From Amoebophrya sp. A120 (lineage: Eukaryota; Protista; Dinoflagellata), in NCBI GenBank assembly GCA_905178155.1, contig CAJINV010000010.1, forward strand, positions 1,633,182 through 1,697,181: a stretch of 64,000 nucleotides of DNA, read 5' to 3'. A program made the position numbers and the translations under genes. The notes under the pieces were generated by a model. The model had not been told where the DNA came from, did no database searches, and saw only the letters and a list, made by a program, of their open reading frames with translations. This document shows, piece by piece, positions 26,950-46,189 of the stretch; within the stretch, counting starts at the first letter, position 1, and every line of letters begins with the position of its first letter.

Positions 26950-29900
26950 ATGGTGTTCGGCATGTTTGCATCGGCGGAGGATCCGCCCGCGCCAGCGGCG
27001 GATACCAGCGAGATGCTGGAGGAGAATCTCGAGGAAAACGACAATGCGCTGGCCCACGCCCCCGTCGCTTCGAAAAAGCCAGGCGGGATTGGCAAGAACA
27101 AAAAATCCGCTGGTGCCGAGGGCGAAACCACGGGTGTGGAGCTGGCAGCGGTCACGATTGACTCGCCCGCGGCATCAAAGGATGACAATTTTGATCGTCC
27201 CCCACCGCCGGCGCGGAAGACGACGGAGATGTGGACGGGGGAAGACCCGAACACGTTGAATCTGAACATGATGAAATCCGAGAATCTGCCCGAGTGGTTC
27301 ACGTCTGGTTTGGAACAGTTTGATAAGGATGGGGACGGGGAGCTGCACAAGGACGAGATTATGCACTGGGTTAATGTGATTTTGCGGATGCGGCAGAAAA
27401 AGGAGGCGAACGCCCCGGATATCGACTACAGTGAGTTTCTATGCATTGCAAAAGCATCGTACGTAGCATAAATTGCATTACAAATTTTCTCAGCATGAAA
27501 AATTGAATTTGTCATGCTGTTTTACCTTGGAAAGGAGATTTTTCATGCATGCCTGCAATTGGTACGAGTGCGATACTTTTGCACAGAATAGTTTCCGCAG
27601 CAGGTGAAAGATGTGATGGCGCGGTGGGATGTCGATCAAAACGGCTTGATCACGGTCAGTGAGCTGGCGGCGGCCGGGCAGGCACAGGAAAAGATGGAGA
27701 AGGAGAATCGGTAAAAAGGGATTCGGATTGTAGTTTGTCATGCGAAAGTTGAAATCACATTCACACTCTTTCACACTTGTCTCGTCTTCCAATGGCAATA
27801 CGAATACTGCTCTATGCAACAGAAATTCCGTCTTTTCGCCTGAACAACAGGTACATGAAGATCGCAATCGCGGGTCTGGTCGGTGTGATCGTTTTACTGA
27901 CGGTCCTCATGTTCGCGATGGGCTACGCTGCCGCGGAAGCTTATCAGATTGGAATCAGTTTCGTACGTTGTTGAGTCGCTAGAAATGATGGGAAAGTTTG
28001 TCATGCAAGAAAGTACACGATGAAGTTTTGATCTTCTGTTCATCAGTTTGAGTTTGATAAGCAATTCTGTCATAGTACGAAGACATGGTCGACAGGGAGG
28101 ACCAATGCAGAGAATGCAGCGTCTGAATTCCCACTGGCAAGATGAACTCAACGAGCGCCCTTTTGCTCCCTCTCGATACCTCTTCCAAGGACTACCGCCC
28201 CGCGTCTGCCGACCACGGCCGGCGGCGCGCGCTGACCGAAGCTACTCTCGCCTCCGAGCAGTCCGCTATGCATTGCAAACGGATCGTACTAGTGCAAATC
28301 GCATTACAAATTTGCTCAGCATGAAAAATAAAGTTTGTCATGCCGGCTTGCCTTGGAAAGCAGTTTTGTCATGCATATCTGCGACTTTAGTACCGCAAGA
28401 CCGCGATTCTTTTGCGTCGCATATGAATGTACGGCGAACGCCTGCGGTTGCTGCACGCGGAGGGTGACGATTCTTCCACGTTGAAAAATCCCCCTGGGAC
28501 GTTTATGGAGGAAGATTTGACCATGAGCACGGCCATGTGCACGAACGTTCTCACCGGGATGGGGGAAGTCATGGAGATTCTCACCACCATCAACCCGAAA
28601 TCCGCGGGGAGACTGCAAACGCTCACTGTTCCCACTTCCCAAGGACAGAAGGTGATCCAATTCTCGGGCGTGACCGTGTCGGACAGGCAGTCCTTGACCG
28701 AAGGGTCCATCCGCGAGTTCTCCCAGGAGGGCGGTGGGCCCAAGATCCGGCTCGTGGCCCCCCCGATGCCGATGTATAACGCGACGGATCCGTGCTTTGT
28801 CTACCCGGAGCGGCGGATGGAGTTTGTGGACGGACAAAGTGGAAACATTGACGTGGTGACCGAGTATTTTCTATCCCACAACGGCTGTCCACCGGTGACC
28901 GGCCCGCCGCTGCCGAATGGAAACCCCGCTTGTGCGCCCCCGACGCCTTTATTTAACGGCTCCATGCCGGATCGGGCGGCCTGTGTCGCCACCGTCCCGA
29001 CGCTGGTGGTACAGTGCGAGGCGCAGAAGCCGAACCCGGTGGGGATGGGGACCATGCCCGCACTGCACACCTACTGCGTGAACGGAATGTGCAATCTGGG
29101 AAACTTCACGATCTTTTACAACGTGATGCCGAACAAGCCGCTTGGCCAAACCGCGGAGACCGTGTTCCTGTTGTGGGACACGAACAATGACACGATTGTC
29201 GACGAAATGGAAATCAACCGGGGGCAGGGCCAGGCGGCCCCGGACTTCCAGCACGCGCAGCAAAGTTTGATGACAACGAGTCAAACCGTGCAGAATTACG
29301 TGACTCACGCACTGGTGCACGGGAACACCACTACCAGAAGACGGATGTTGGAGGCGCAATTGATCGCTGGGACGTTCGAGACAGAACGGCGGCTTTCGGA
29401 AGACGGTCAGACCGAGCGGACTTTGATGGCGAAGCCGTCTTGGTGGACGGCGGGAGATCCGCGGCGGATTACCGACATTGCGACCAAAATCTGCATGGTC
29501 AGCAATAGTATCCTGTGCAAAAGCGTCGTACTCGGTTACTTCATCGGATTCGTGCAAGACAAATTTCTGGGTCAACCTAAATCAGCATGACAAGTTCCAT
29601 CTGTCATCCTGAGCTGCTAATTTGTATTGCAATGCCACGAGTACTATGATATTTTTGCAGTTCATACACAGCCACTGCGCCAACTCGGTGGAAGCGGATC
29701 GATTGGCAGAGGCTTTGTGCGAAGGTGACAAAATAGTACGTCTCTTTCATGATTCAGGTTTCGACCTGCTTGCAGAAGAAAGCAACATAAATAGTTCTTT
29801 CATCCCTTGTGCTTCTTGATTCTGCATCAGCACATGATCCTGTGGTCCCTGTGCAGTTACAAAAATCGCTATCAAGAATTCTGATGTACTACTTACGCAC

Positions 29901-32900
29901 GACAAACTCTACAAACAGGTAACGAAGCGCTGTGCGAGACCGCTCCGGCTATGACCCGTTCTTTGGACCGTGATGGCGACGGTCGCGTGAATGAACGCGA
30001 ATACGAGGCGATTCACGAGAAAGCGCGTCCGGATCCCGACGCGCGGAACCGCCGCGACGTTGAGGAGCCCAGGCCGGATTCCGATGTTTGCCCGAATTTC
30101 AACACGCCGGATATCGGCGACGGGATTGACTGCGGGTCGGAGGAAGACTTGGGGAAACTGAAAGACATGGCGGACAAACGTTCCTGGTGCTCGAAGGCGG
30201 CGGGGAGAGACGGCATTCTGGATAACGAAGAGTGCAAAAACGCCAATCGCGTCCCCACAGCTTTTGACACGATGGCGGAGATGCAGGCGCAGGGCGACGT
30301 CCGGATGAAATCGATGATTGAAAACAGTGGGGTCGGACTCCCCGCGTGCAAGCAGTTTTACATGCGGGAAAAAGCTTTAGATGATCCTGTCGCTGAGGTG
30401 ATCTGCCACATCCGGGATTTTGAGTACCCTTTCATGGATGAGTCTTCCGGTTTGTCCGCGAAGGAGGCGAACCTGGACATGGGACTACTGCTGGAACGGT
30501 ACGGGTCGGAAGGCGCTTCCGCGTCTACCACCGTCCGGAAATTGCAGCAAGAATTGGGGTTTGGGAAACGCACTCGGGACAAATTCGGGAACATCATCAC
30601 GCAAGAGTCCGCTTTGGCGCGGCAGGGCACGGATGTGCAGGATGACCCGTTGCACTACCACGTGTTCGAAAAACTTATCAACACGCCCCGCGCCCGCCGG
30701 ATGGAGCAAAAGATCATCAACAAAGAGCGGAAACTTCGTCAGAAGCGGCGGATGCTGCACGGATCGAACTCCGAAATGTATGAGTCGTGGCTTTTGGCGA
30801 GACGGCTGAAAGCGACGGAGAAATTGCGGAGACGCCGGGTCTTGCTTGCGTTTGACGAGGAGAAGGATGACCCGGAGGTCACCCACCGCAAGTTACAGTC
30901 GATCAACCGGCGACTGGAGCAAATTTCTGAAGCGAAGAACAGCGGCGAAGCCGCCAGTTCCCTCCGTCGGTTGGAGCAGACCGGTCGGAGGCTGTTAGCG
31001 GAAGATGATGATGGTGATCGAAAGTTGCGGTTCTTACTGGACGATGACAACCACTTGATCACGCGGAATTTACAGCAGTACCAGCAGGAGTTCAAGATTG
31101 GCTCCACCTCGCGGCACATGCGGGAATTGATGACGCTGACGCACGCGGGGAAAAGAAACTTGATCAGTTTGGAGCAGATTGGGGAAAAGGTCATGAATTA
31201 CATCATCACCGACGATGTCGATGGTCTGCAGACCTGGGCCATGACCATGCTCCGCAGCGACATCCGCATCTCCATTCCGAAGCAGGCGATCTTGTACTTG
31301 CTGTACGACGCCCGCGACCCGTTGGGGATTGGGATGGGCGTGGCTCGGTATTTGGATCAGTTTATGTCGGACAACCAGGCGGAGGAAATGCGGGAAGAGA
31401 CCGGGCGGATGCCGGAGTCGCAAGACTTTTCCCGCTACGACCGCGACGGCGAGACCCTTGCCGACGTGCGGCCCCGCATGCGGCAGCTGTCCCACCAAAG
31501 ACGCGTTTTGGTCGAGATCGCAGAGCGGCGCCGGATGCGGGCCTTGCAGGAGAAGGATGGGAATCAGCGACGGAAGTTGCTGGAAGAGACTGATTCCATT
31601 CACCGCCGGCTACACGAAGTGGCACGGCACGATCCGGACGAAACACGGGTGTTGAACTCGGAAGAAATTCGGCAGATGAGCGAACAAACGCCGTTGAACG
31701 AGCGGGAGACAGAGCGGGTGATTGAACACTGTCGGAGGGAGAATAGAGACTTGGAAGGGGCGCAAGCGCGGCAGTTCACGCGGTTGCTGAAGCAGCTGGA
31801 TTTGTCCGACTCGGATATGAGTGCACAACTCCCCCTGCGCCTCCCCCTCATTTGTATTTAGCATGAACAGCAATACAAACTACACCAGCACACGCAGAGC
31901 GTATGCATGACAAATTTCTTGTGTGCCCAATGTAGTGCTTCTTCTTGGGCTCCTTCCGGAATCATTTGTGATGCAAACAGTGCCACAAGGCAGCGACTGG
32001 ATTTGGGGTGTTGCATGACAAATGAGGAAGAGGGGGAGTTGTGCACTGTCATATCGGAAAGGCGGGAACTCCGAGACGCCGCGGAGGATGCTGGGATGTC
32101 CTCGGATCGGGATGAAGAGCCCGTGGCCTGCACCCCGTGCGCCTTAGCCACCGCTCCCACGGTTGGGATGACCCCGGACCACTTACGGGATGCCGTGTTG
32201 AACAACAACGAGCGACAGGAGGGCAACCCGGACTGGTGCGCCACGCAGTTCCAGGACATGCAGGCCATGGCGGTCAATGTCCCCACCTGTCTATGAGAGT
32301 GGACAACTCCCCTTCCCCTCATTTGTCTATGCAAAATCGCAAATTCAGGCTGTGCCTCTTGGCACTGTTTGCATGACAAGTTCTGGTAGGAGCCCAAATA
32401 GCACTACACTCCAGTGGAAATTTGTCATGCAGAGCCGGCATTCTTACTGATGCTTGTATTGCAGTTCATGCTATACAAATGTACTGGAGGGGGAGTTGTC
32501 CACTGTCATACTGTCTCGGCGCGAGTCAGAACGCGACTACGGGGGAATACATGACCCCGATCGCGACCTACCCGGCGGACCAGCCGGTGACCTTGCCGCG
32601 GGTGCCGGAAGCATACACCGGCGCGATTGCGGCTGCAAACACCGCTCCGACCACGGGGAATTTGATGGCGGCCGGGTCGGTGACGCCCCAAGCCGGCGAC
32701 GTGATCGACCCTTACACCTGCGCGGGCGCGAAGCCGCCGGCCCAGCCCGGAGCGGCGGCGGCGATTCCCGACACGCAGTTCCCGACTTATGCCCAGGCGG
32801 GTGGAACTAGGCGAAGTTTAAGGACTTTTGACCAATCGGACTTGGTATTGACGACGAAGCCGAGAAACCTTTCGAAGCAGCACGTCAATAAACACAAGCG

Positions 32901-35900
32901 GCCGAAGGGGCGGAGTCTCACCGCGAACGTGTCTCCCTCTCTGGATCTTTTTGCGCACTATCAAATGCAAATATGTCTGGGTCTGGAAACCTGTGATGCT
33001 GAAATGCGCATGAGTGAAACGATTGCAATAGCAGCCAAGCATGACAGGTTTTTTGAAAGCTTATTTCATTCTAATGCCCAGCACACATTAGACATCACGA
33101 ATTGCATTTCTGCATGACAAAGCAAGCTGCTCTTTTGCCGCTCGTGCAACACAGATTTTTCAGGAATGCAAGATATGCATTGCAAAGTCCAGCTTCCCAG
33201 ACCCAGACATACTTGCAATGCATACGCACAAGTCCAAGCCCATGTCGTACGCGAAACAGTTGCAGAGAGAGCAGGAGGTGGAGATGCGGCGAGTCCGGAG
33301 GGAGCGACGGTTGTTGGAGGAGCACATGCAAATCGGGAATGACGAGCCTGGTACAGCTTCTTTGAGTAGGAACCCAGAAGCGGAGATTCTCTACGACGGG
33401 AACGGTCGGAAGCTGATGCCGGCGCTCTCCCAGACGATTTGCCAGTCCGCGAACATCCCCGATAGTGAATACCTTTGTTGCCACACGGGGATTTGCATCA
33501 CGGAACACGCGAATCCAACGCAGATGGAGAATCCAGACCGGGACATCACGCAGGGCGGGGAGCCGATGGCGCGGATGGACCCGGAGCCGCCTGCGCCGGT
33601 GACCTTCTCGCAATTCGTGGATCGCATGATGCATGAATTACCCTCGTGTAAGAAACTTCCCCCGGAGGAGCGGCAGATGCCGCTCGACGCGGCGACCCAG
33701 AACTTCGACCTCGACCACGACCACACGTTAGCTTTCAACATGGAAGTGGACAAAATGGGCCCGGGGTGCGTGAAGGAGTGCGGCTGCCACTACTTAGGCT
33801 TGCATCCGAACACCGGGGAAGATGTCTTGGTGAACATCTGCAACTACCAGGCGGAAGTCCGGTGCGGCTGCATGAAAAACAAAAAGCATTGCTTCGACGA
33901 GATCATGCGGACCTGGGAAGAGAAGGGAGGAACCCGCGATGAGCGGGGGAACAACCGGAGGGCCAGGATGCAGCGGCGAGAGCGCCGCCGCCGGAATCTC
34001 CGGGAGAGCCGGTTGCAGTCCGGAAACTTTCGTCGGTTGACGAAGTTCGACGTGAAGAAAGTGCATCACAAAGTGGAGATGCAGAAGGACCACAGGGCGC
34101 ACTTACTCCGACGGGTTTTGCAGGAGAATGACGTGGAAAAGATCGAATCCTTTGAGAAGGAATTCCATCTCGGGTTCGGAAAACGCCACAAATCTTTCCG
34201 GGTTTTGACCGGGAAAACCGGGGACCGGTTCCGACAGCTCGCGGTGGTCGACCATTTCCACCGCCGGCTGCGACGGCAGCGCCGGATGTTATCTACTTCA
34301 CAGACAACCGGCGTCCACGAAACTGCGCTCGGTTACCACAACATGGGTACCGCGGTTGCGACCGGTGTGGTCGCGATGGCGAACCCGGCCACTTCTCCTC
34401 CACCGACGACTGGTCCGCCGAGCTACATCGAGTCTGCCGTTACCACCGCTTGGCTGCCGGACACGACGACGCCACTTCCCCCTAGACCCGCTACCATCAC
34501 CGAGACCGCGACCACGCCGCCGGCTTTAGTGACCCCGATTTCCGGGAACCGGACCACGCCAATTACGGTAAAAGCGGTGATTGACCAGTCGTTCTTCGAC
34601 TCCCGGGACGGCATGTTCAAGCAACTTTTGTACATGGACGTGAACCGGCGGGAACCTCCGCCCAGAAACATTACCGCCGACCCCTACGACACGGTGATTT
34701 GCGCCACGTTTGAGCAGAACGCGAACACCCACGCCCCGCTCACCGAGTGTATGAACGCGATGCCGTGGGACCCGGACGTGATGGGCTATCACCCCCAGTT
34801 TTTTGATGACTACCACGCGGGGACAGTGCATTGCCCCACGGGAAATGACAATGACTGGTCGGGAACGGCGTATGCGACCGCGATGGCGAATTTCGACGGG
34901 AACAGAAACGGAGACGACATTGATTTTCTCCAAAACACTATCCAAGAAAAAAACTGTGTAAGTGTAACTTTGTGTTGCAGAAAATGCAAAACTTTTACAC
35001 TCGTCATGCTGGACATGCATCAGAGGATATTTTCGCACGTGTTTTCAAGTACTAGCTAGGCATGACAGGTTTTCTGCGTCATGCAGAGCAAACTTGTGAC
35101 GCTATTCTTCCAAGAGACTTACACTTACACAGTTTTTTTCTTGCATAAACACCCCGGAAGGGTACACGTGTTTCGAGGGCATGATGGTGCCGGATTACAC
35201 GGTCAAAGAACACGAGGACGAAATGTCGAGTCGCAAAACTTCTGGCCAGGTCTTGCATGAGGTTTGCAAGCCGCAGCAGAACCCCTTCGGCCCGGAGTTG
35301 AAGATGGAGTTGGAGAATTTCGCTTACGAGCACTTCACGGAAATTGACGCGTGCCCGGACTGCTGCGAGGGCTTTCCGACGCTTGGGGATTTGATGCTGC
35401 ATGAAGTGCAGCTTGCGTTCCCCGAACCGGGAGTTTTCCACAATCGGGAACTAAAGCAACCAGCGCTGCGACGGCAGTTCGACGCGCTTGAAGCTCGGGT
35501 CGGCACTTCCCCGAACGTCCAGGAACGGGCGCACAACAGCGTGATGGAAAAGGAGTTCGGTGCGCACAGCATCATCGAAGCCGTGACGTTCGGAATTGCT
35601 TCTGGGGATATCGCCCCTCTGATTGAGAAGGCGATGGACAAATCTGGCGATATTTTCGATTCGATCAAGAATTACGCGAGCCGGGATCCGAGTAGCGATG
35701 AATTGACGTTTGGGGAAATCAAAGCTTATTACGAGGATTGTCAGAAGTCGCAGCGGCCGCCCGGTTTGAGCTCCGAAGTCTGCGAATTGCTGAACAAAAT
35801 GATTGACATTCTGGAGCAAAAGATTCTCCCCCCGGCGTCGGCGGGTCGGGATGCCATCCCGGCGACGGCTTCAATTTCCCGGATGGAAATCATGATATCA

Positions 35901-38900
35901 AATGCAAATTGCCGGCTTTGTTATGCATATTTTGCATGACCCAGGATTGTGTGTGATGCATGCCCTACCATCACAGACTTTTCGAGGGCTTCCTTCCTGA
36001 TGCCTACTCCGCATGACAAATGCACTCCCCGCGTACGTAGCACAAACTAAACTCCTCTTGCTGGTCATGCAATACAGACGTTTTTAGAGTCCAAAGTTAG
36101 CATCACAAGCTGCAACCTTCCAGACCCAGGCACTTATGCATTTGATACATAAACGTTGTCGACCAAACCATCCCTGGCAACGAGCCCGGCATGCCGATGG
36201 GGGAAAGGATGGGTGCAGGCGATTACTTCTGCTCGCAGATGATGGACGGGGAGTCCGGTTGCATTGAACGGGCGTGCATTGAGCAGACGTTTTTTGACCA
36301 GTCGAACAACCAAGCTACTGTTCCCCGTGACGCTTTGTACGAGCCGGCCACTGAAGTATGCATTGCAAAAGCATCGTACAACTCGTATACTAATTGCGTT
36401 TATGCATTACAGATCCGCGCGCTTACGCAAAACAGCACGACAAAGTGCAGCTCTCCTTCTGCATCAAGAATTTGCAATGCAATCACAACTACTAGCAGTA
36501 CGATAGCGATACTTTTGCAATGCATATCAAGCCCGAGAGATCAAATCCGACAGTAGGCCGATGCTGGATTCTGACCGCGAGGAAAAACAGGAGCGGATGG
36601 ACAGTAACGAGAGGGACATCACCACCAGCCAGATGAAGGACCGCGCCTTCGCTATTGCAAGGAAAAATTCCCCCTCTCCATACTGAAAAGGTATGTTTCA
36701 AAAAATTTGTGATGCTGATTTGTGACCACAAATCCTGTCTCTCTTGCAAGAGGGCAAGCTCAGAGACTCCGCCACGATATGCAGGCGATCTGTGACGCTG
36801 CAAGGCCCGTAGGGCAGACGTCTGCCATGCTAGGCCCCTACACCAAGAGGCCGCCGCTGAGGCTTACGATCTGCGTGCAGTCCTTTACTGCAAGACGAAT
36901 ATGATTTGTGTACTCAAATACAGCAACACAAATTTCGTCTTCGATATGGGGAGGGGGGGTCTTTCCTTTTGATATTCACCGAGGGTGAGTCCTGCGGCGC
37001 CTCGATTTGCGAGCGTATGCAAGCTAGAAGAAGAAGACGGTTGTTGCGGCGGGCAAGAGAGTTACAGGCGGACGAGAAGCGGGTGCTGTCGGAAAAAAAG
37101 GAAAAAAACGCAGTCGTTGGGGGAATGGAAGGTGCAGCGCGGGGTTTGAATGAAATCGCTGTTTCTTCCCTCCAAGCCCACCTCCAAACCGCTCTGCAGG
37201 AGGAGATCGACTTCCTGAAAGATTTCTTCCCGGAGGAAGAGCACGCCCGTCGGCTCACGGCGATCACCTTCGAACGGGCGGGGAACAAGGCGACAGGCTT
37301 GGGCCACTTCTTGCGGAACGACACAAACCTCGATGGGGGTGTCGATCCGCAAACTGGGATGAAGGTGGGGTCTTTGTTGACAGACCTATGTGAGTGCACA
37401 ACTCCCCCTATCCCTCATGATTTGTCATGCAAAATACCAAATACACCCTTTGCCTCTTGGCACTTTTCGCATGACAGTTCAATCAGTACTACAGTCCGGG
37501 GTGGATTTGTCATGTGAAACCTGCATTCTTGTCGACGCTTGTGCTGCTGTTTGTGCAATGCAAACGAGGGGGAGGGAGAGTTGTGCATTTTCATACATAA
37601 GACCCTGCGGGGAACTACATCAATGTGGATCCCAATGCTGGCGCCTGCCCCAACGCCGCCGCTTTGTTCGCAACCGGGGTTCCGGATACGGAGTTGGAAG
37701 AGGTTAATCGTGCGATTGAGAAGCTGAATAAAACCATGTCTGATATGAGAGTGCACAACTCCCCCTCCCCCTCATTTGTATGGCATGAACAGCAATACAA
37801 AGACAAGTTCACATGGAGCTTATGCATGACAGATCTACGTGCTTGATGTAGTACTGTTTGGGCTTCCGGAATTTGTCATGCCAACAGGGCCACAAGGCAG
37901 CGACTGGATTTGGGATTTTGCATGACAAATGAGGGGGAGGGGGGGTTGTGCACTGTCATATCTGATGCGCGCTCCGCGTTAGCGGAGACGAGACCGGACT
38001 TGTCCGAAGACGTGCACCAGCACCGCCAGGAGGAGTACAATAAAATGGACAATTTCATGCGCGATTTCGAATATGCAAGACAAAAATATCCTACTAGGTT
38101 GAATTGCAACACAAATTTTTTCAAGAACAGAAAGTGGGTTTGTCCTGCTATATCAGATAGAAAGTTAGATCTCCCATGCGTGACTGCAATTGGTGCGAGT
38201 GCGATATTTTTGTGATGCATATCGAAACCGCGGCGGCGATTGTCCAGTCCTTCGCGAACAATCACACGGAAACGCGGAAAAAGGAGGACGCGGCAAGGAT
38301 GAACAGAACTCTGATCGTCAACATGGACAATTTGAAGAACAACGTCGTCCCGACCGCCGCCACCGCTTCGACCACCCCGAACCCCCCGAGGGAAGTGATA
38401 TGCAATGCAAAAGCATCGTACAACTAGTATGAATTGCATTACAAGTTTCCTCAGCATGAAAAATGGAATTTGTAATGCGGATTTACCTTGAGAAAAATTT
38501 TTGTAATACATGATTGCAATTAGTACGAGTACGATACTTTTGTACAGGATAAGTGACCCCGACCTATGATGTCGCGAAGGCGATGGAAACGTGTCTGAAC
38601 CACATGAACCACGACCACAAGCCGGATACGGGGTCGCTCGTCTATGCATTGCACAAGTATCGTACTCGTATTGATGGCAGGCATGCATTTTTACAAATCC
38701 CATTCTTACGGTAAATCCGCATTACAAATTCCATCTTTCATGCTGTGGAAATTTCTCATGCGACTTATACTACTGCGATACTTTTGCAATGCATATCGTC
38801 CCGGCGGAGGCGATGGTGACGCACGACACGGTGATTGACCACTGCATGAGCACGCAGGGCAACAACCCGCCGCCTCCCATGGAGCCGGGTATGGACCCGC

Positions 38901-41900
38901 AGGCCATGCAGCACGAGCAGTGCGAGCAGGAGTGGCAGACGATGGCAGAGATGGAGCGCGGCGCAGTGGATGCGATCACCGAAGACGCGTTGCAGAATTC
39001 CTTTGCGCCAGCCCACGGCGAGATCCACCAAAACGTCCCCATCCCCACCGAGGAGCAGTGCGTCCCGATGCCGAACGACTACTCTGGCGCGGAGATGGCA
39101 ATTTCCACCGGGTTCCGCCGCTCCTTGCAGCAACGCCACTCGAAGTTGACGAAGAAGAAGAACAGTAATCGTCGGAAGTTGCTGGAGAAACAGCTTCTCG
39201 GGAAAAATTTCTTCCACGCGGCCCATGTCGGGAAATTGAGGGATCAGAGAAGGGTTTTGTTCGACACCCCGATTTCCGAGGATGGCAAGCGTCACCTCTC
39301 GACGGTCACCACCGGTGGGGTTTATCTAATGTAAAAATGTCTGGGTCTGGAAACTTGTGATGCTGGGTGGCGTCTCATAATGAGGCTACAAATGCTGGCT
39401 CAGCATGACAAGTTTCTGAGCTCCTAGGTGTTGCCTATTCTGCATGACAGACTGCGCTTCTGCATCACAGAAAAACGGAGCTCTTGGGCAACGTGCATCA
39501 CAGATTTAAGGGTCATGCCAGACAAGCATGACAGACATGAATTCTTCCAGACCCAGACATTTTTAAATTTGATAGGGTCGTGGGGAACACCATGCTCCCG
39601 GCCGGGGAATCTACCACTGGCTGCATGCCGATCTCTATGGATTGCATAATGTAACTGGGTCTGGGAGATTGCGATATTTGCGATGCTAGTCTGGTATGAC
39701 TTTGAAATCTGAATTGCGTGGCCGCCTAGAGCTCCTACTGCCTGTCATGCGAAAACGCAGTTTCTCATGCGGGGCACACAACAACTCAGAACCACGGAAA
39801 AACTTGTCATGCTGGGCTGCGCATTACAGAGTGCTCACTCTCCCCTTCCTTGCATCACAAGTTTCCAGCCCCAGACATTTTTGCAATGCATAATCTCCGG
39901 GGAGTCGCAGCTCCAAATGACGGACGGGTACGACGGTCCGGGTGTGATGATTATGCAATACAAATAAAGCATCGCACTCGTATAGATGCATTACAAATTT
40001 CCTCAGCATGAGAAATGAAATTTGTAATGCAGATTTGCCTTGGGGGCAAGATTTGTAATGCAAGACTTGCAGCATTTATACGAGTGCGATACTTTTGCAC
40101 AGGACAATGATGGCGGCGGATCGAGAAGAGGCGTTGGACAACTTCGCCTCCGGGGATCAAATGATGCAAGACGCGCAGATGGAATCCATGGCCATCGCCG
40201 CCGACGTCACTATCGCGAACCACGACCCGGCGGGCGGGATCAACCTAGACTACCCGGACACGACCACCCCGACGCTGGATGAGGACCCGTATCTGAACAG
40301 CAACTACGCGGGCTTTGCTCCGATGAATATGCCCCCGCGTCGTGGCCTGGAGCAGAAGGGTAGGGGCACCCGCGCCCGGATGCTGAAGCAGATCGAAAAT
40401 CGGAAAAACGCCGAGATTCGACAGCAAAAGCGGAAGTTATTGGAAAAAGAGTACCGCCGGATGTTACCGCACGACAACACGACCGCGAGTAGCACGATGT
40501 CACCGTACAATTACAATTACGACACCATGAATTCCGCTCCCAATGTATCCTGCGTAAAAACGTCCCCACCCGATAGTCAAGTTGGTAAATCTGCAACACA
40601 AATCTCCAAGTTTCGGGAGTATTGCATGACAAGTTTCCCTCCAACATGACAAGTTTCCCTCTGTACCGTCGTGCTGTTTAGCAAGGGCGGCCGCATGAGA
40701 AAGCCCGCTTCTCATCCTGTTTACAGCATTATTACAAAGTCCAAAACACGAGGACTGGAAATGCCTCTCATGCTGATCCGCATTACAAATGTTCCTGTCA
40801 TTGCGCATTTGCATGACAACTAGGGTGGGGACGTTTTTACACAGGATACAACGTGATGCCCAGCAGCATGGCGCCGGGAATGAATTCCTTTTCCATCCCC
40901 GAAGCATCTACGATGGATCCGCAGGCGAAAGCCGCGGTCATGAACATGTACTTCGACGCGTATGAATCCACGTCCCCCTACCCGACCACGGCCCCTCCGG
41001 GAACCGTCACGACTGCGCCGCCAACGACGACCTCGACGACTTCGACTCCATATCATCTAGATTTCGGGTACAACAACGACTACAGCTACACCACGTCCGC
41101 TGCGCTGGTGCAGGATTCCGTGGCGACGACCATGACGACCACGACAAGCAACACGTTGACGGTTACTCCTCATTGGCTCCTCGGTTGGGACTACCGGTAC
41201 GACTACATGTGGGACGACATCACGCAGATGAGCATTGTATCGTATGAAAAAAGTGTTTCACTGTAAGGATTTTGCAGGTTTTGCAGCACAAGTTTGTTCC
41301 ACATGACAGATGAAATTTGCCATGCAAGGTTTCTAAGGGAAAACACAGCTAAAAATCCACTGTCCTGCATGTGTAGCAAGACAAATACTTCTGTGTTGCA
41401 TTGTATGCATCACAAGTTTAGTACAGTGAAACAGTTTTTTCTTGCGATACATTGAAACTATCGTCTACACCGGTACCAACGCTACCTTGATGGCGATGTA
41501 CCCGTCTGATACGGATTACGAGGTCGCGATGACCGCCGAGCACATGGAAATATGCATTGCAAATATGTCTGGGCCTGGAAGAATGCAAACTTGTGATACG
41601 CATTTCATAACGCAGAAAAATCTCTCATGCATAGGCAGCAAACGCTGCCCGCTTTCTGTCACCAAAATAGGGCATTTGCCATGCGGATTCGGCATTGCGG
41701 AAGCTTCTCGAAACCTGTGATGCTAGAGCTTCCATGCCATACCTTCTGCGTCATGCAAAAGCAGCATGACTCTTCCAGACCCAGACATATTTGCATTTGA
41801 TAGGAAACCGGCTTGAACCAGATGCAGGATGAACAACAGTCGAAAACCGCACAAGAGATATGAGAGTGCACAACTCCCCTTCTCCCTTATCTGTAATGCA

Positions 41901-44900
41901 AAAGACCAAACCCACATCCTGCCTTTATGCACAGGCCGCATGACAAATTTTAGAGACTTCAAACAATTATACCACAACCCGTGTCGTGCAGATTTGTCAT
42001 CCGGGAGCCACATTTCTGCCGCTTTCTGTGTTGCTGCTCCTGCCCTTCAGATAAGGGGATACAAAGGGAAGGCATGCACTCGCATAAGAGATGAACACCA
42101 CCGTGAAAGACGTCTTCGATGCGCAAATGTCGTACGACGGGGACCTCCACGTCCCCAGCTTCATCCCTCCGAACTACGACTGCTGGCAGCTATGCATTGC
42201 AAAAGTAACGTACTAGTAGTACTTGCATTACAAATTAGCTCAGCATGGCAAATGGAATTTGTGATGCAGATTTACCTTGAGAAAGAGATTTGTAATACAT
42301 AAATGCAACTACTACGAGAGCGATACTTTTGCAGAGCATAGCAGCACGGCACCAGCAACTTCGTCGAGCAGTGCTACGACGAGTACTATGGGTATTACTC
42401 CGTGCATATCAAATGTAAAAATGTCTGGGTCTGGAAGGGTGGGTACTTGTGATGCAAACTCTGGAACACGCGAAAATTTGTGTTGCATGAGCGCCAAAAG
42501 CTGTCCATTTCTTGGCACGCAAGTAGGAAGTTTCTCATGCGGGACAGGCATCATGACGCTTGCTCAAAACCTGTGATGCTTTTGCCTGCATCAGACGCCA
42601 TTTGCGTGATCCGAAACATGCATGACAAGTCTCGCAATCTTCCAGACCCAGACATTTTTACATTTGATAGTGCAGAAAGACTTCGGCGCGATCTGCGAGC
42701 ACCGGAAGTGGGTGCAGGCGAAGGCGATGGAGGTGGCGGAAGCGGTGAAGAAGGTGGTGGAGCAGAAAGCGTATACTGAGGCGCATAGTGGGTTGTCGCG
42801 CCGGGTGAGGCGGATGTTGAAGGAGAAGAAATCTTCGGTGTCCGAATCTGTTCCGATATGAATTGCAAAAGCATCGGACTAGTATGAATTGCATTACAAA
42901 TTTTCTTAGCATGAGAAATGGAATTTCATTTCTAATGCTGGTTGACTTAAGCAAAAAGATTTGTATTGCATGATTGCAATTACGACGGGTGCGATACTTT
43001 TGCACTTCATATCCGACGTACGTTCGGAAGTTATTGAAACTTCCGCAGGAGTGGGAGCACGACGCGAAACGGCGGCTGAGTAATTACATGATGCAGCCGG
43101 AAGCGATGTTCAATGATTTCTTGACGATGGACTCCGCGAATTCGACCGGGCAGGATTCCTCCGCAGATCTTCCGGCGAACTTGATGGTCGATTCCATGTA
43201 CAACATGATGACGTACAACGAGTCCCAGCAGGTGGAATCCCCCGACGCGGTTATTCTAAGTAAAAGCCTCCCCACGACGACCCCATAGTTGTCATGCAAA
43301 TCTGTATTTCCAAATTGCTTCTCATGCGCAACCCCATGAGCAGCAGTTTCCCATGCTGCCCGGCACTTTGTCATGCTCTAATCAGGATAGGGAGCTGGAT
43401 TCGTGATGCGGCTTCACTAGCAGAACACCACTACACTAGACACCCAAAGAACTTGTCATGCGCAACAGCCAACACTTGCCGACTTGTGTAGCAAAAGCCC
43501 CATCTTGACTCTGGGTTCTTGGGGAGGTTTTTCCAGACGATAGCGGTAGCATCCATGCTCGTCGGTTTGGAATCCACCATGGACCCAGATTACGTCGCGG
43601 CCGTGGATGATATGCTGGAGTCCTTTGAGCGCCGGAAGTTAGATATCTACATGCAGGCGCGTTCGAAGCCGAACTACTTGCAGGTGATGCTGAACATGGG
43701 TTTGAACCAGACGGAAAAAATCAAGCTGATGCGGGACATCCAGGAAGTGGTTTACGCCCAGGAGCCCGTATGAAAGTGCACAACTCCCCCTCCCCCTCAT
43801 TTGTCATGCAAAATTCCAAATCTACCGTTTGGTATTGGTTTGCCTGTTAGTACTGTTTGCATGACAGATTCCGGAATCCGAAACAGCACTACAATCTCCT
43901 AGGATTTTGTCGTGCAAAGGCTGCATCTTTGCCAGCGCTTGTGTTGCTGTTCATGCAACACAAATAAGGGGGAGGGGGAGTTGTGCACTGTCATAACCCG
44001 GCGCCTGCACCCAGATGGGCGCGGCGTATTACAAGCCGGGGGGATGCAATTCGCTGTACGAGGAACAGCTGGGTTGCGCGAATCTCCGCTGGATCTCCAC
44101 CTACTACGATCAGTACACTTATCAAGAATATTTCAACGATTCTTGGACCCAGCCGCACAACCGCTGCGAGCAGAAGAAGCGGGAGTTGCGGTCTCTCGCG
44201 ATTGGCGGGACAAACAAGGAATCCGCTCCGATGCTGCAGGCGCTGAGTCAACTGCTCCAGCGGATCGGGGACGGAAACTACCCAAGCACCGGGTTTTTAT
44301 GAGAATGCACAACAACTCCCCGCCCCGCATTTGTCTTGCAAAATGCCAAATCCACCCCTTGGCCTGTGGCACTGCGTGCATGACAGATTCCCGAAGGAGC
44401 CGAAACAGCACTTAGAACATATGGACTGTGAGTTTGTCATGCAAAAGCTGCATCTGTGCCGCCGCTTGTGTTGCTGTGAATGCCATCCAAATGAGGTGCA
44501 GGAAGAGTTGTGCACTCTCATAGCTTTCGGAATTGTTGTGGAAAACCGGCTTGCGGAAGCCTCTGACTGCTTCGGAAGTGACGAATCTGCACGCTATCTG
44601 CACGTCGGTTTATGACGGGACGAACGGCTGGGGCGTGAAGCAGGAGTGTCGGTACGACGACTGCGGCAACGAAATCGGTTGCAACTTCGACAAGCGAGGG
44701 CAGCGAGAGGTGAAAGACATTCTGAACTGCCCGAACGCGGTTCCACCCCCGCCGGGCACGTGCGCGAGTCAGGCCGGCGGGAATTTCTATTGCACAACCG
44801 CGAAGGCGGATTTTATCCACCACTGCAAGAACGTTTTGGACTTCCTCGTTGAAATGATGCCGGCGGAAGACCACTACGACCCAGTCTCCAATAACTGGAT

Positions 44901-46189
44901 TGCGGGTTACCACGCAGAGCAGATGCGCATGGCGCTGATCTTCGAACTGGACCCGACTTTTGTCTACCCGTATGACCCCGAGCCGGTGGAGGCCGCGGGG
45001 TCGCGGTTGGCGAAGTGCACGATTCAGGCGGTTCGGGAGAATTTGCCAGAGGAGCCGGTGAAGGAGCTGTTCCACTTAATGGAGACCGGGGAAGTGTCCC
45101 CGCAGGCTGCCATGGAAAAGATGTTGCAGCCGAAGTTGGATAACGTTTGCAACGCGACCAGCCACGTGCATGAGGCGATGGAGATGATGATGAATATGAC
45201 GGATAACTGTAAAAATTTCTGCATGACCTTCAAGATGTGGGAAGAGACCAACTACCAGATGAGTTGCGCGAACCGAATTGCTAAACCGATGTTCGACAAC
45301 TCGTTCGCCTACAACGCCATGCAGGAGCCGCTCTGCCGCCCGGACGTGGAATGTAAGCTGTTTAACGAGATGGCCCCGGTGCACGAGAAAAACAACATTG
45401 TGAACGCCAAGGTGGTATCAAGTGCAAAAGTGTCTGGGTCTGGAAGAAAGCGCCATGGTCACGCAGCTCTTCCATGACCCATGAACTCTGGAATGCAGGA
45501 CCTAGCATGACAGATTCTGTGCGATCTCTCTCATGTCTATCCTGCATGAGAAACTCCCTCCCGACTTGGTCAAAAGCAAAACTGGACGACTTTTGGTAAT
45601 CATGCAACACAGATTTTTGCATGCTTCAGATTTAGCATGACAAGTTGAGTTCTTCCACACCCAGACATTTTTGCAATTCATAGGTGGCCGGCACGCGGCT
45701 CCGCGAGCGCCGCTTGCGGCGACTCGAGATTGAGAACCGGCGGGTCAGACGGCTGGAAGAGTCGAAGGACTTGAAGAAGAAGTGTATGTCCATTGACAAC
45801 GTTGAATACTTATGCTCTGCAAAAATATCGCACTCGTACTCATTGCAATCATGCATGTCAAATCTTGTTTCTTAGCCAAATCAGCATTACAAACTCCATT
45901 TCTCCTTCTGAGAAAATTTGTATTGCGATTTACACTAGTGCGATGCTTTTGCAATGCATAGTACTGTGCGAGCGACAACAATCAAGTGGCCGGGATGACG
46001 AGCGAAGAGTTGGAAAAGCAGCGGCGCCTGGAGTACTGGGAGGAGCGGGGCATCGATTCCATCGCGACGGCGACGAACCCGGCGAAAGCGCAGCGGATCT
46101 CGAAGTTCCGGTCGAACCGAAAGCAGCTGCGGAAGAGCCGGCGGATGAACCGCCGGGGAAAGAACCGCCGGGTCCGGCGGCGGAACTAA
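26950..46189 (+). CDS. Giant ~4032-aa protein: N-terminal EF-hand pair, one TM helix, then Cys/Thr/Pro-rich modules alternating with RRL/RKL-rich basic spacers
   Basis: Removing 31 introners (+5 bp each) and GT-AG introns 27711-27850 and 29725-29918 gives 12099 nt with the frame continuous at every junction; FDKDGDGELHKDE, WDVDQNGLITVSE; TM KIAIAGLVGVIVLLTVLMFAMGYAAA. Confidence 0.82.
27440..27590. mobile_element. Introner family A
   Basis: TSD gtttc/gtttc. Confidence 0.9.
27942..28178. mobile_element. Introner, degenerate, unassigned
   Basis: TATC..GATA ends, internal tttgtcatgc; TSD decayed aagct/cctct; frame restored by 5-bp rule. Confidence 0.6.
28267..28423. mobile_element. Introner family A
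   Basis: TATGC..GCATA; TSD decayed tccgc/tgaat; frame restored. Confidence 0.75.
29509..29666. mobile_element. Introner family A
   Basis: TSD aatag/cacag. Confidence 0.8.
31816..32053. mobile_element. Introner family C
   Basis: TSD tcgga/tcgga. Confidence 0.9.
32292..32510. mobile_element. Introner family C
   Basis: TSD ctgtc/ctgtc. Confidence 0.9.
32959..33224. mobile_element. Introner family B
   Basis: TSD cgcac/cgcac. Confidence 0.9.
34939..35147. mobile_element. Introner family F
   Basis: TIR TAT.CAAGAAAAAAACTGTGTAAGTGTAA; TSD aacac/aacac. Confidence 0.9.
35896..36147. mobile_element. Introner family B
   Basis: TATCAAATGCA ends; TSD catga/cataa. Confidence 0.85.
36357..36526. mobile_element. 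Introner family A
   Basis: TSD tgaag/tcaag. Confidence 0.88.
36653..36974. mobile_element. Introner family E
   Basis: 322 bp, similar to 58511-58832; TSD ttcgc/ttcac. Confidence 0.85.
37387..37599. mobile_element. Introner family C
   Basis: TSD agacc/agacc. Confidence 0.88.
37744..37960. mobile_element. Introner family C
   Basis: TSD tctga/tctga. Confidence 0.9.
38072..38221. mobile_element. Introner family A
   Basis: TSD tcgaa/tcgaa. Confidence 0.88.
38399..38551. mobile_element. Introner family A
   Basis: TSD agtga/agtga. Confidence 0.9.
38643..38795. mobile_element. Introner family A
   Basis: TSD tcgtc/tcgtc. Confidence 0.9.
39323..39574. mobile_element. Introner family B
   Basis: TSD gggtt/gggtc. 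Confidence 0.9.
39636..39892. mobile_element. Introner family B
   Basis: TSD atctc/atctc. Confidence 0.9.
39952..40106. mobile_element. Introner family A
   Basis: TSD atgat/atgat; right end ACA instead of ATA. Confidence 0.88.
40546..40848. mobile_element. Introner family G
   Basis: TIR TATCCTG.GTAAAAACGTCCCCACCC; TSD caatg/caacg. Confidence 0.9.
41238..41449. mobile_element. Introner family F
   Basis: TIR TATCG.A.GAAAAAA.TGTTTCACTGTA; TSD cattg/cattg. Confidence 0.9.
41551..41802. mobile_element. Introner family B
   Basis: TSD ggaaa/ggaaa. Confidence 0.9.
41859..42086. mobile_element. Introner family C
   Basis: TSD agaga/agaga. Confidence 0.88.
42191..42340. mobile_element. Introner family A
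   Basis: TSD gcagc/gcagc. Confidence 0.9.
42407..42669. mobile_element. Introner family B
   Basis: Perfect 31-bp TIR TATCAAATGTAAAAATGTCTGGGTCTGGAAG; TSD gtgca/gtgca. Confidence 0.93.
42857..43011. mobile_element. Introner family A
   Basis: TSD tccga/tccga. Confidence 0.9.
43252..43542. mobile_element. Introner family G
   Basis: TIR core AAAA.CCTCCCCA; TSD gcggt/gcggt. Confidence 0.85.
43769..43995. mobile_element. Introner family C
   Basis: TSD gcccg/acccg. Confidence 0.9.
44298..44522. mobile_element. Introner family C
   Basis: TSD gtttt/gcttt. Confidence 0.88.
45416..45682. mobile_element. Introner family B (opposite orientation to 59495)
   Basis: TSD ggtgg/ggtgg. Confidence 0.9.
45811..45960. 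mobile_element. Introner family A
   Basis: TSD atact/gtact. Confidence 0.9.

Follow-up and report, generated by a model that had tools for sequence, protein, structure and literature searches.

Dense, conserved R-x-L sites in a giant type II EF-hand protein of the dinoflagellate parasite Amoebophrya sp. A120, a candidate substrate of a plasmepsin V/ASP5-type protease

In apicomplexan parasites, plasmepsin V (PMV) and ASP5 cut after the leucine of an R-x-L motif in the endoplasmic reticulum or Golgi. They are central to maturing the exported effectors of malaria and Toxoplasma parasites, and their origin and ancestral substrates are a standing question. Other alveolates offer a second point of comparison, since the Tetrahymena Grl and Paramecium trichocyst matrix proteins are acidic, Ca2+-binding secretory precursors that are matured by proteases, aspartyl cathepsins included. 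Further protease classes with basic recognition sites are the site-1 protease (S1P, or SKI-1), a subtilase that cuts after R-x-hydrophobic-L, and the kexin/furin-type enzymes, which cut at dibasic pairs. Amoebophrya, the subject of this work, is a syndinean dinoflagellate and a parasite of other dinoflagellates (marine microalgae). As for the apicomplexan enzymes, PMV requires RxLxE/Q/D 15-30 residues after the signal sequence, and ASP5 cuts RRLxx and matures substrates near either protein end, at sites far from the N-terminus included (PMC4764566). Here we describe a gene on the forward strand, at positions 26950-46189 of a 64,000-nucleotide (nt) stretch of Amoebophrya sp. A120 ("the window"; contig CAJINV010000010.1, positions 1,633,182 to 1,697,181), whose predicted product is a membrane-anchored EF-hand protein with 70 R-x-L sites. 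Our literature searches found no paper linking PEXEL or plasmepsin V with Amoebophrya, and no description, for a dinoflagellate parasite, of a giant EF-hand protein of type II topology that carries some 70 conserved R-x-L sites.

On the + strand between 26.9 and 46.2 kb, the locus reads as many stop-free fragments that are split by elements of about 155-330 nt belonging to several families, all of them with TA...TA ends, terminal inverted repeats and 5-bp direct repeats on both flanks. Excising each TA...TA element together with one copy of the 5-bp target duplication fuses the fragments into runs of 1,227, 602, 543 and 384 codons. With all introns spliced out, a single frame of 12,099 nt and 4,032 amino acids (aa) without an internal stop results, exactly the length that a first-pass annotation of the window had obtained by the same 5-bp rule.

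26950..46189, + strand: whole gene, ATG at 26950, TAA at 46187-46189, 34 exons

Model residues 1-2556 are identical to the public protein CAD7961469.1 (P0001; "unnamed protein product [Amoebophrya sp. A120]"; 2,591 aa). In that entry, the intron at 37386-37603 is spliced 4 nt short, with AGAC of the second direct repeat retained; after aa 2556 the frame shifts and 35 out-of-frame residues precede a stop. Due to this mis-splice, the public record lacks the C-terminal 1,476 residues of the real protein. We aligned the model to homologues along its whole length, and 31 of the 33 junctions are gap-free within ±6 aa against a paralogous genomic open reading frame (ORF) or a transcript of another strain. 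One of these homologues is a 3,937-aa paralogue (C1; G000:C1:15929-15943 kb), which aligns end to end at 60-63% identity and contains only 4 introners (intron-forming elements of the kind just described) and 3 GT-AG introns, most of its coding sequence lying in exons of up to 3.9 kb. Among the MMETSP transcripts of Amoebophrya sp. Ameob2, P0002 (1,109 aa) covers aa 43-1070 and P0018 (2,964 aa, from a 10.3-kb contig) covers aa 1088-4018. A second and much more divergent paralogue of roughly 34 kb (C6; G000:C6:~419860-454140, - strand; L011-L016) shows 27-67% identity over the matched pieces and keeps the EF-hand, the transmembrane (TM) segment, the first R-x-L site and collinearity to aa 4005. 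The locus is one real gene that is truncated in the public annotation; its model is hereby corrected from 2,591 to 4,032 aa, and the 5-bp introner rule rescues long genes that annotation pipelines have broken. Throughout, database searches were run exon by exon or by locus, the joined 4,032-aa model being used only in local statistics and alignments, and genome searches covered the 115.5-Mb A120 assembly.

A profile search against 1.84 billion representatives returned only 15 proteins at E ≤ 0.001, and the significant matches are from Amoebophrya (A120, A25, Ameob2, AT5) or are marine metagenome fragments. By the reach of these matches, the protein family is restricted to Amoebophrya and marine alveolates. 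The metagenome fragments (P0004, P0005, P0008, P0009 and P0019, from GOS, ENA and Logan), in which R.L lies far above L.R, place the family in uncultured marine alveolates.

From its predicted topology, the product is a type II (signal-anchor) membrane protein with about 200 cytosolic and about 3,800 luminal or extracellular residues. Its main features are the following.

27322..27357, + strand: EF-hand 1 loop DKDGDGELHKDE, aa 125-136, on the cytosolic side; Pfam EF-hand_6 and EF-hand_1 matches of the exon below cut-off
27628..27663, + strand: EF-hand 2 loop DVDQNGLITVSE, aa 175-186, read from sequence
27861..27935, + strand: single TM segment or signal anchor, aa 206-230 (core of 203-232), kept in C1, C6 and Ameob2
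29174..29212, + strand: luminal EF-like loop WDTNNDTIVDEME, aa 509-521, conserved in C1, Ameob2 and A25 P0007
29966..30001, + strand: luminal canonical EF loop DRDGDGRVNERE, aa 654-665, with a weak Pfam EF-hand_1 match on the exon
34388..34537, + strand: Thr/Pro-rich mucin-like stretch, aa 1882-1931
40976..41050, + strand: Thr/Pro-rich mucin-like stretch, aa 3121-3145
46103..46186, + strand: strongly basic C-terminal tail, aa 4005-4032; its final 12 residues have a net charge of +8

The N-terminal 200 residues contain no cysteine and two canonical EF loops, which form the pair of 12-residue loops in helix-loop-helix units typical of EF-hand Ca2+-binding proteins. On the window exon alone, the Pfam EF-hand match scores 17 bits, below cut-off, because an introner splits the pair; above cut-off it is found in the C1 exon (EF-hand_7 30.4 bits, EF-hand_1 35 bits) and in Ameob2 (EF-hand_7 32.3 bits, EF-hand_1 42 bits). 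Residues 203-232 form the sole Kyte-Doolittle peak above 1.4 in the whole protein. All 81 cysteines, the best conserved residue type (94-96%), lie behind this segment, as do all 23 N-x-S/T sequons, the two mucin-like stretches and two EF-type loops, a distribution which suggests that the ~3,800 residues are luminal or outside the cell. The WDTNNDTIVDEME loop has invariant residues N253, D254, T255, V257 and E261 (exon numbering), and P0002 holds a strong EF-hand_1 stretch at 649-664, the equivalent of the DRDGDGRVNERE site. In the net charge profile, about ten different acidic Cys/Thr/Pro-rich modules alternate with basic stretches. Thus the two N-terminal EF-hands, the one TM helix, the EF-like loops and the alternation of acidic and basic parts that had been read from the letters of the window are all borne out. 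Structure and domain searches of the modules, which had also been proposed, yielded the EF-hands and little else: Pfam on ten exons returned nothing beyond weak EF-hand matches, and the ESM Atlas held no usable match for module 1.

The most conspicuous property of the protein is its R-x-L content. The first-pass annotation had noted more than 40 such motifs; we counted 70, where 24.9 are expected (z 10.6). Global shuffles gave an expectation of 19.9 and local shuffles within windows of 40, 20 or 12 residues gave 23.5-26.9, and 70 sites were reached in 0/2000 shuffles, so that the composition-shuffled control, named beforehand as a possible refutation, leaves the excess standing. R.L (z 10.1) deviates most among about 1,600 gapped residue pairs (0-3 gaps), with RR second (z 5.4). 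The reverse pair L.R occurs 20 times, which equals its expectation, the ratios of observed to expected are about 1.0-1.1 for K.L, R.I, R.V and R.F, and in the other ORFs of the window R.L is about as frequent as L.R, with no such bias. It is a second basic residue, present at about two thirds of the sites, that drives the excess: RR.L is enriched 6.1-fold, KR.L 3.8-fold and R[RK]L 4.9-fold, as against 1.4-fold for a lone R. Two residues after the leucine, E is enriched 6.6-fold (R.L.E) and Q 8.2-fold (R.L.Q), an enrichment that corresponds to the PEXEL form RxLxE/Q. The motif can be written as [R/K]-R-x-L or R-[R/K]-L, often followed by x-[E/Q]; 31 of the 70 sites are R.L.[EQD] and 16 are RRL. 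Within the basic clusters, 59 sites compare with 16 expected from cluster-only shuffles (z 12.8). Hydrophobic i/i+3, i/i+4 and i/i+7 pairs in the clusters lie at expectation, that is, without heptad periodicity, and on this ground coiled-coil periodicity was rejected as the source of the motif. The sites are distributed as follows.

28220..28240, + strand: first site, RRRAL/TE, aa 245-251, 15-18 residues after the TM segment
29342..29965, + strand: cluster of 4 sites, aa 565-653
30536..32071, + strand: largest cluster, 25 sites, aa 844-1274, all-helical in the AlphaFold model
32812..33415, + strand: cluster of 6 sites, aa 1447-1557
33992..34291, + strand: cluster of 7 sites, aa 1750-1849
37035..37256, + strand: cluster of 6 sites, aa 2440-2513
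39119..39298, + strand: cluster of 4 sites, aa 2831-2890
40341..40466, + strand: cluster of 4 sites, aa 3012-3053
42811..43078, + strand: cluster of 3 sites, aa 3356-3391
45708..46030, + strand: cluster of 4 sites, aa 3925-3980

The motif is conserved among homologues. Both R and L are kept at 52 of the 68 sites covered in C1, at 51 of 68 in Ameob2 and at 23 of 43 in C6. Identity amounts to 0.80-0.87 at the motif R, 0.67-0.90 at the motif L and 0.53-0.60 at x, and in the flanks to ~0.47-0.75 (C1, Ameob2) or ~0.32-0.56 (C6). Even conservative exchanges are rare, R-to-K being seen at 3% of motif R versus 8% of other R, and L-to-M at 4% of motif L versus 12% of other L. At 62-68% of the conserved motif R/L positions the paralogue uses a different codon, which argues for selection on the protein. 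The first site keeps its R.L in C1 (RRQL), Ameob2 (RRLL) and C6 (RRL), and in all homologues R.L is far more frequent than L.R. From these comparisons we conclude that R-x-L behaves as a selected, sequence-specific recognition element. The same data bear on the trivial explanation that the excess just mirrors composition or DNA-level repeats, or comes from a faulty gene model, a thought that comes naturally given basic stretches rich in R, L and E and a locus full of repeated elements. However, neither local shuffles, down to 12-residue windows, nor within-cluster shuffles ever reach the observed count; the repeats are intronic and excised from the model, which has no internal protein repeat; the codons at conserved motif positions differ between paralogues; and the model is backed by the public protein, a paralogue and transcripts. 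We therefore reject this explanation, whose probability we regard as close to nil.

Which factor might recognize the motif? The search for an ASP5 orthologue that had been suggested with the first-pass annotation was successful, with a PMV/ASP5-type gene found on C3.

G000:C3:8749173-8752852, - strand: PMV/ASP5 orthologue, multi-exon, with DTGSS, YTEGSSISG, middle and VDSGTT exons

One exon of this gene (L033:1480-2964:-) matches only plasmepsin V structures in the PDB (4ZL4, 6C4G and 8TYF; E 7e-16), in an alignment that spans DTGSS and the Cys-rich FPCxGCxxCG insert (FPCSGCRHCG here). A second exon (L033:656-1150:-) likewise matches only PMV, and frames downstream contain YTEGSSISG and VDSGTT. 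Taken together, the PMV-only structure matches, the DTGSS and FPCxGCxxCG signatures and the DSGT motif indicate that a PMV/ASP5 orthologue is present in the A120 genome. Its predicted N-terminal extension is long, acidic and Ser-rich. Four pepsin-like (A1) loci elsewhere in the genome were also considered, L022 by eye. Tested against solved structures, L017 and L024 proved cathepsin D/E-like and were rejected as PMV-like candidates, and so was L030, a distant TM-anchored A1 protease. The latter (L030:1195-3189:+; G000:C1:6271431-6273425) is a single-exon, 665-aa divergent member of the pepsin family. Its N-terminus is signal-like, it contains DTGS, DSGS and long inserts, and basic residues follow its C-terminal TM segment; its PDB matches are weak, the best being plasmepsin X (E 5e-7). 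Across many contigs, Pfam Asp gave 43 exon-level matches at more than 12 loci, numbers that suggest an expanded set of pepsin-like proteases in Amoebophrya A120.

Given a selected R-x-L motif and a PMV/ASP5 orthologue, we propose, at a confidence that falls a little short of an even chance, that this type II protein serves as a Ca2+-binding secretory precursor and is processed at R-x-L by a PMV/ASP5-type enzyme, where cleavage is what we infer. R-x-L would then be the recognition site of the A120 orthologue. A cut at the first site, 15-18 residues past the anchor, would release the luminal part, and cuts at a subset of the later sites would separate the modules. The products, acidic and Ca2+-binding, would be destined for a secretory organelle, for the surface of the parasite or for its interface with the host. 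Several properties by which PEXEL/TEXEL substrates are recognized can be found here: secretory entry through a recessed hydrophobic segment (the single TM at aa 203-232), sites of the form RxLxE/Q/D or RRLxx with strict R and L, a first site (RRRAL, aa 245-249) within the range of 15-30 residues after the hydrophobic segment, and a PMV/ASP5 orthologue in the same organism. The other 69 sites are internal and compatible only with the ASP5-type rule. The earlier suggestion of a precursor cut at RRL/RxL motifs is thus supported in so far as the RxLxE/Q form and the orthologue support a PMV/ASP5-type motif, and in so far as distinct modules are separated by RxL-rich basic stretches; the classical tandem type of polyprotein does not apply, since the modules are not repeats of each other.

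Several observations weigh against such processing. AlphaFold modelling of exon 7 (631 aa, 15-row alignment) returned an all-helical structure with pLDDT ~80-93 at residues 260-410 and a pTM of 0.38, in which 21 of the 23 R-x-L sites lie within predicted helices, and buried or helical sites are poor protease substrates. The minimum spacing between sites is 7 residues, so that cutting everywhere would yield very short peptides. The sequence between sites is itself conserved, which suits a folded domain equally as well as a string of peptides. To our knowledge, known PEXEL/TEXEL substrates carry one or a few sites, not 70. Lastly, the AlphaFold model of module 1 gave no usable fold (pLDDT 36), leaving the nature of the products guesswork.

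Alternatively, the protein may stay uncut, with R-x-L as a repeated site at which a partner without proteolytic activity docks (a sorting receptor, a chaperone, or a lectin-like or matrix protein) or as a specific structural element of a helical stalk, so that the mature form would be an intact giant Ca2+-binding protein of the surface or an organelle membrane. The confidently predicted helices around the sites speak for this alternative, as do a mild spacing peak at 7 residues, a number of sites far beyond that of any known PMV/ASP5 substrate, and blocks such as TGRRLxAEDDxxDRKLRYLLDDD and MRELMxLTHxxKRNL that are conserved between the sites across homologues of 35-60% identity. Generic helix packing, however, would not be expected to demand strict identity (R not K; L not I, V or M) or a direction (R.L 70 versus L.R 20), nor to lack heptad or amphipathic periodicity, and both the placement of the first site and the RxLxE/Q form agree with the PEXEL rule. 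With its pTM of 0.38, the exon-7 model offers no evidence for a packed domain, and a Foldseek search with it against the PDB turned up no structural relative at E ≤ 0.001. On balance, we regard an uncut protein as a serious possibility, to which we would assign roughly a one-third share of our belief. If it holds, a dense, strictly conserved luminal motif would point to an undescribed recognition system.

Processing by an enzyme of another class, that is, S1P/SKI-1, a kexin/furin-type protease or another pepsin-like protease, has a different set of observations behind it. R[RK][LM]L occurs 12 times where fewer than one is expected, RR is the second most enriched pair (z 5.4), the second basic residue is a majority feature of the sites, and A1 proteases occupy at least a dozen loci in the genome, some of them encoding a C-terminal TM segment. 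On the other hand, the conserved spacing is that of R-x-L and not of RR; L is often followed by E, Q, S or R, a better P1' for a PMV-type enzyme than a P1 for S1P; and in RRxL the L is often preceded by K, S, G, N or H, where S1P favours a hydrophobic residue. Judged by site sequence alone, the 12 R[RK][LM]L sites fit the S1P register and most sites do not. The RRLL/RKLL reading that had been offered beside the ASP5 one is the poorer fit, as it would put the conserved L at P2, with E or Q often coming next. We consider this alternative improbable.

Viewed as a whole, the earlier interpretation of the locus is partly supported. If cleavage by the PMV/ASP5-type enzyme does take place, PMV/ASP5-type enzymes would gain their first multi-site "polyprotein" and their first non-apicomplexan substrate, suggesting a new route by which many secreted products arise from one gene. 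Further, RxL maturation, thought to be an apicomplexan invention for host targeting, would already be at work in syndinean dinoflagellates. It is tempting to speculate that RxL (PEXEL/TEXEL) maturation operates in this group and dices a giant Ca2+-sensing precursor, anchored in the membrane, at dozens of conserved sites into a mixture of secreted modules and short peptides for infecting microalgae, a broader scenario that we rate as rather unlikely at present. In any case, a lineage-specific family with about 70 selected RxLx(E/Q) sites in a genome with a PMV orthologue provides a testable candidate for the ancestral use of the pathway.

The intron structure of the gene is remarkable in its own right. 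More than 60% of the introns in the Amoebophrya genome are non-canonical, and its introner elements carry inverted repeats of 8-20 nt and direct repeats of 3-5 nt across the exon/intron borders (PMC7789003). Our model contains 31 introner introns and 2 GT-AG introns. The 31 introners have TA...TA (non-GT-AG) borders, 5-bp direct repeats and terminal inverted repeats with 11-16 of 16 bases matching, and thereby share the defining features of the Amoebophrya introner elements (Farhat et al. 2021).

+ strand, introners 1-8 in list: 27439-27594, 27941-28182, 28266-28427, 29508-29670, 31815-32057, 32291-32514, 32958-33228, 34938-35151
+ strand, introners 9-16 in list: 35895-36151, 36356-36530, 36652-36978, 37386-37603, 37743-37964, 38071-38225, 38398-38555, 38642-38799
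+ strand, introners 17-24 in list: 39322-39578, 39635-39896, 39951-40110, 40545-40852, 41237-41453, 41550-41806, 41858-42090, 42190-42344
+ strand, introners 25-31 in list: 42406-42673, 42856-43015, 43251-43546, 43768-43999, 44297-44526, 45415-45686, 45810-45964
27711..27850, + strand: GT-AG intron 2, GTAAAA...AACAG/G, whose junction ...EKENR/YMKIA is collinear with C1 and Ameob2
29725..29918, + strand: GT-AG intron 6, GTGACA...AAACAG/G, with a GT-AG intron at the equal position in the C1 paralogue

In three introners the direct repeats have decayed (27941-28182, AAGCT/CCTCT; 28266-28427, TCCGC/TGAAT; 29508-29670, AATAG/CACAG). The length rule of "element + 5 nt" is still obeyed in all three, and their junction residues fit a register in which the first 4 bases of repeat 1 are joined to the last base of repeat 2; the public protein shows the same register. 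Two other gene models were discarded. A longest-ORF dynamic programme with free GT-AG introns gave 5,578 aa and was over-extended, with spurious introns, and a 4,056-aa model with GT-AG introns at 27963-28141 and 43250-43536 was rejected when the C1 alignment revealed insertions of 21 aa and 3 aa. Both miscalled GT-AG sites are introners, one with the decayed repeats AAGCT/CCTCT and one with the direct repeat GCGGT. The window copy thus carries 31 introners (about one per 390 nt of coding sequence, with at least 4 end families) and the C1 paralogue 4, all elsewhere, and 29725-29918 is the only GT-AG intron position that we saw in both copies. Inferred from the two sequences, this uneven load indicates a strongly uneven and recent invasion of one paralogue.

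How, then, does the protein compare with known systems? The dinoflagellate polyproteins (light-harvesting, peridinin-chlorophyll and Rubisco form II) resemble it in being long products proposed to be cut into mature parts. However, they consist of tandem copies of one unit, whereas all modules differ here and Amoebophrya lacks photosynthesis; self-BLASTP at E ≤ 10 gave no off-diagonal match, hence none of the repeated homologous units with a repeated spacer that characterize a tandem-unit polyprotein. The alveolate extrusome matrix precursors are small and soluble, with processing sites that are not RxL, in contrast to a membrane-anchored chain of 4,032 aa, and they show no homology to it, as only Amoebophrya and marine-alveolate sequences match the A120 protein. 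With S1P (SKI-1) substrates it shares 12 or more RRLL, RKLL, RRML and RRVL tetrapeptides, but the conserved pair is R and the L two positions later, after which comes a variable residue, often an acidic one or Q. From PEXEL/TEXEL substrates of Plasmodium PMV and Toxoplasma ASP5 it differs in the number of its sites (about 70, most of them in predicted helices), in a hydrophobic segment that is preceded by an EF-hand pair and set 200 residues away from the N-terminus, in its host, a syndinean dinoflagellate instead of an apicomplexan, and in that its sites are predicted ones in a protein without sequence homology to any known substrate. Nevertheless, it resembles these substrates in secretory entry by a hydrophobic segment, in RxLxE/Q/D or RRLxx sites with strict R and L, in the 15-18 residues between that segment and the first site, and in an orthologous protease gene in the same genome; ASP5 also accepts internal sites (PMC4764566). 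Apicomplexa provide precedents for both the enzyme and the class of motif; what the papers we searched do not describe is a lineage-specific EF-hand protein of this size and type II topology, with about 70 conserved sites, in a dinoflagellate parasite.

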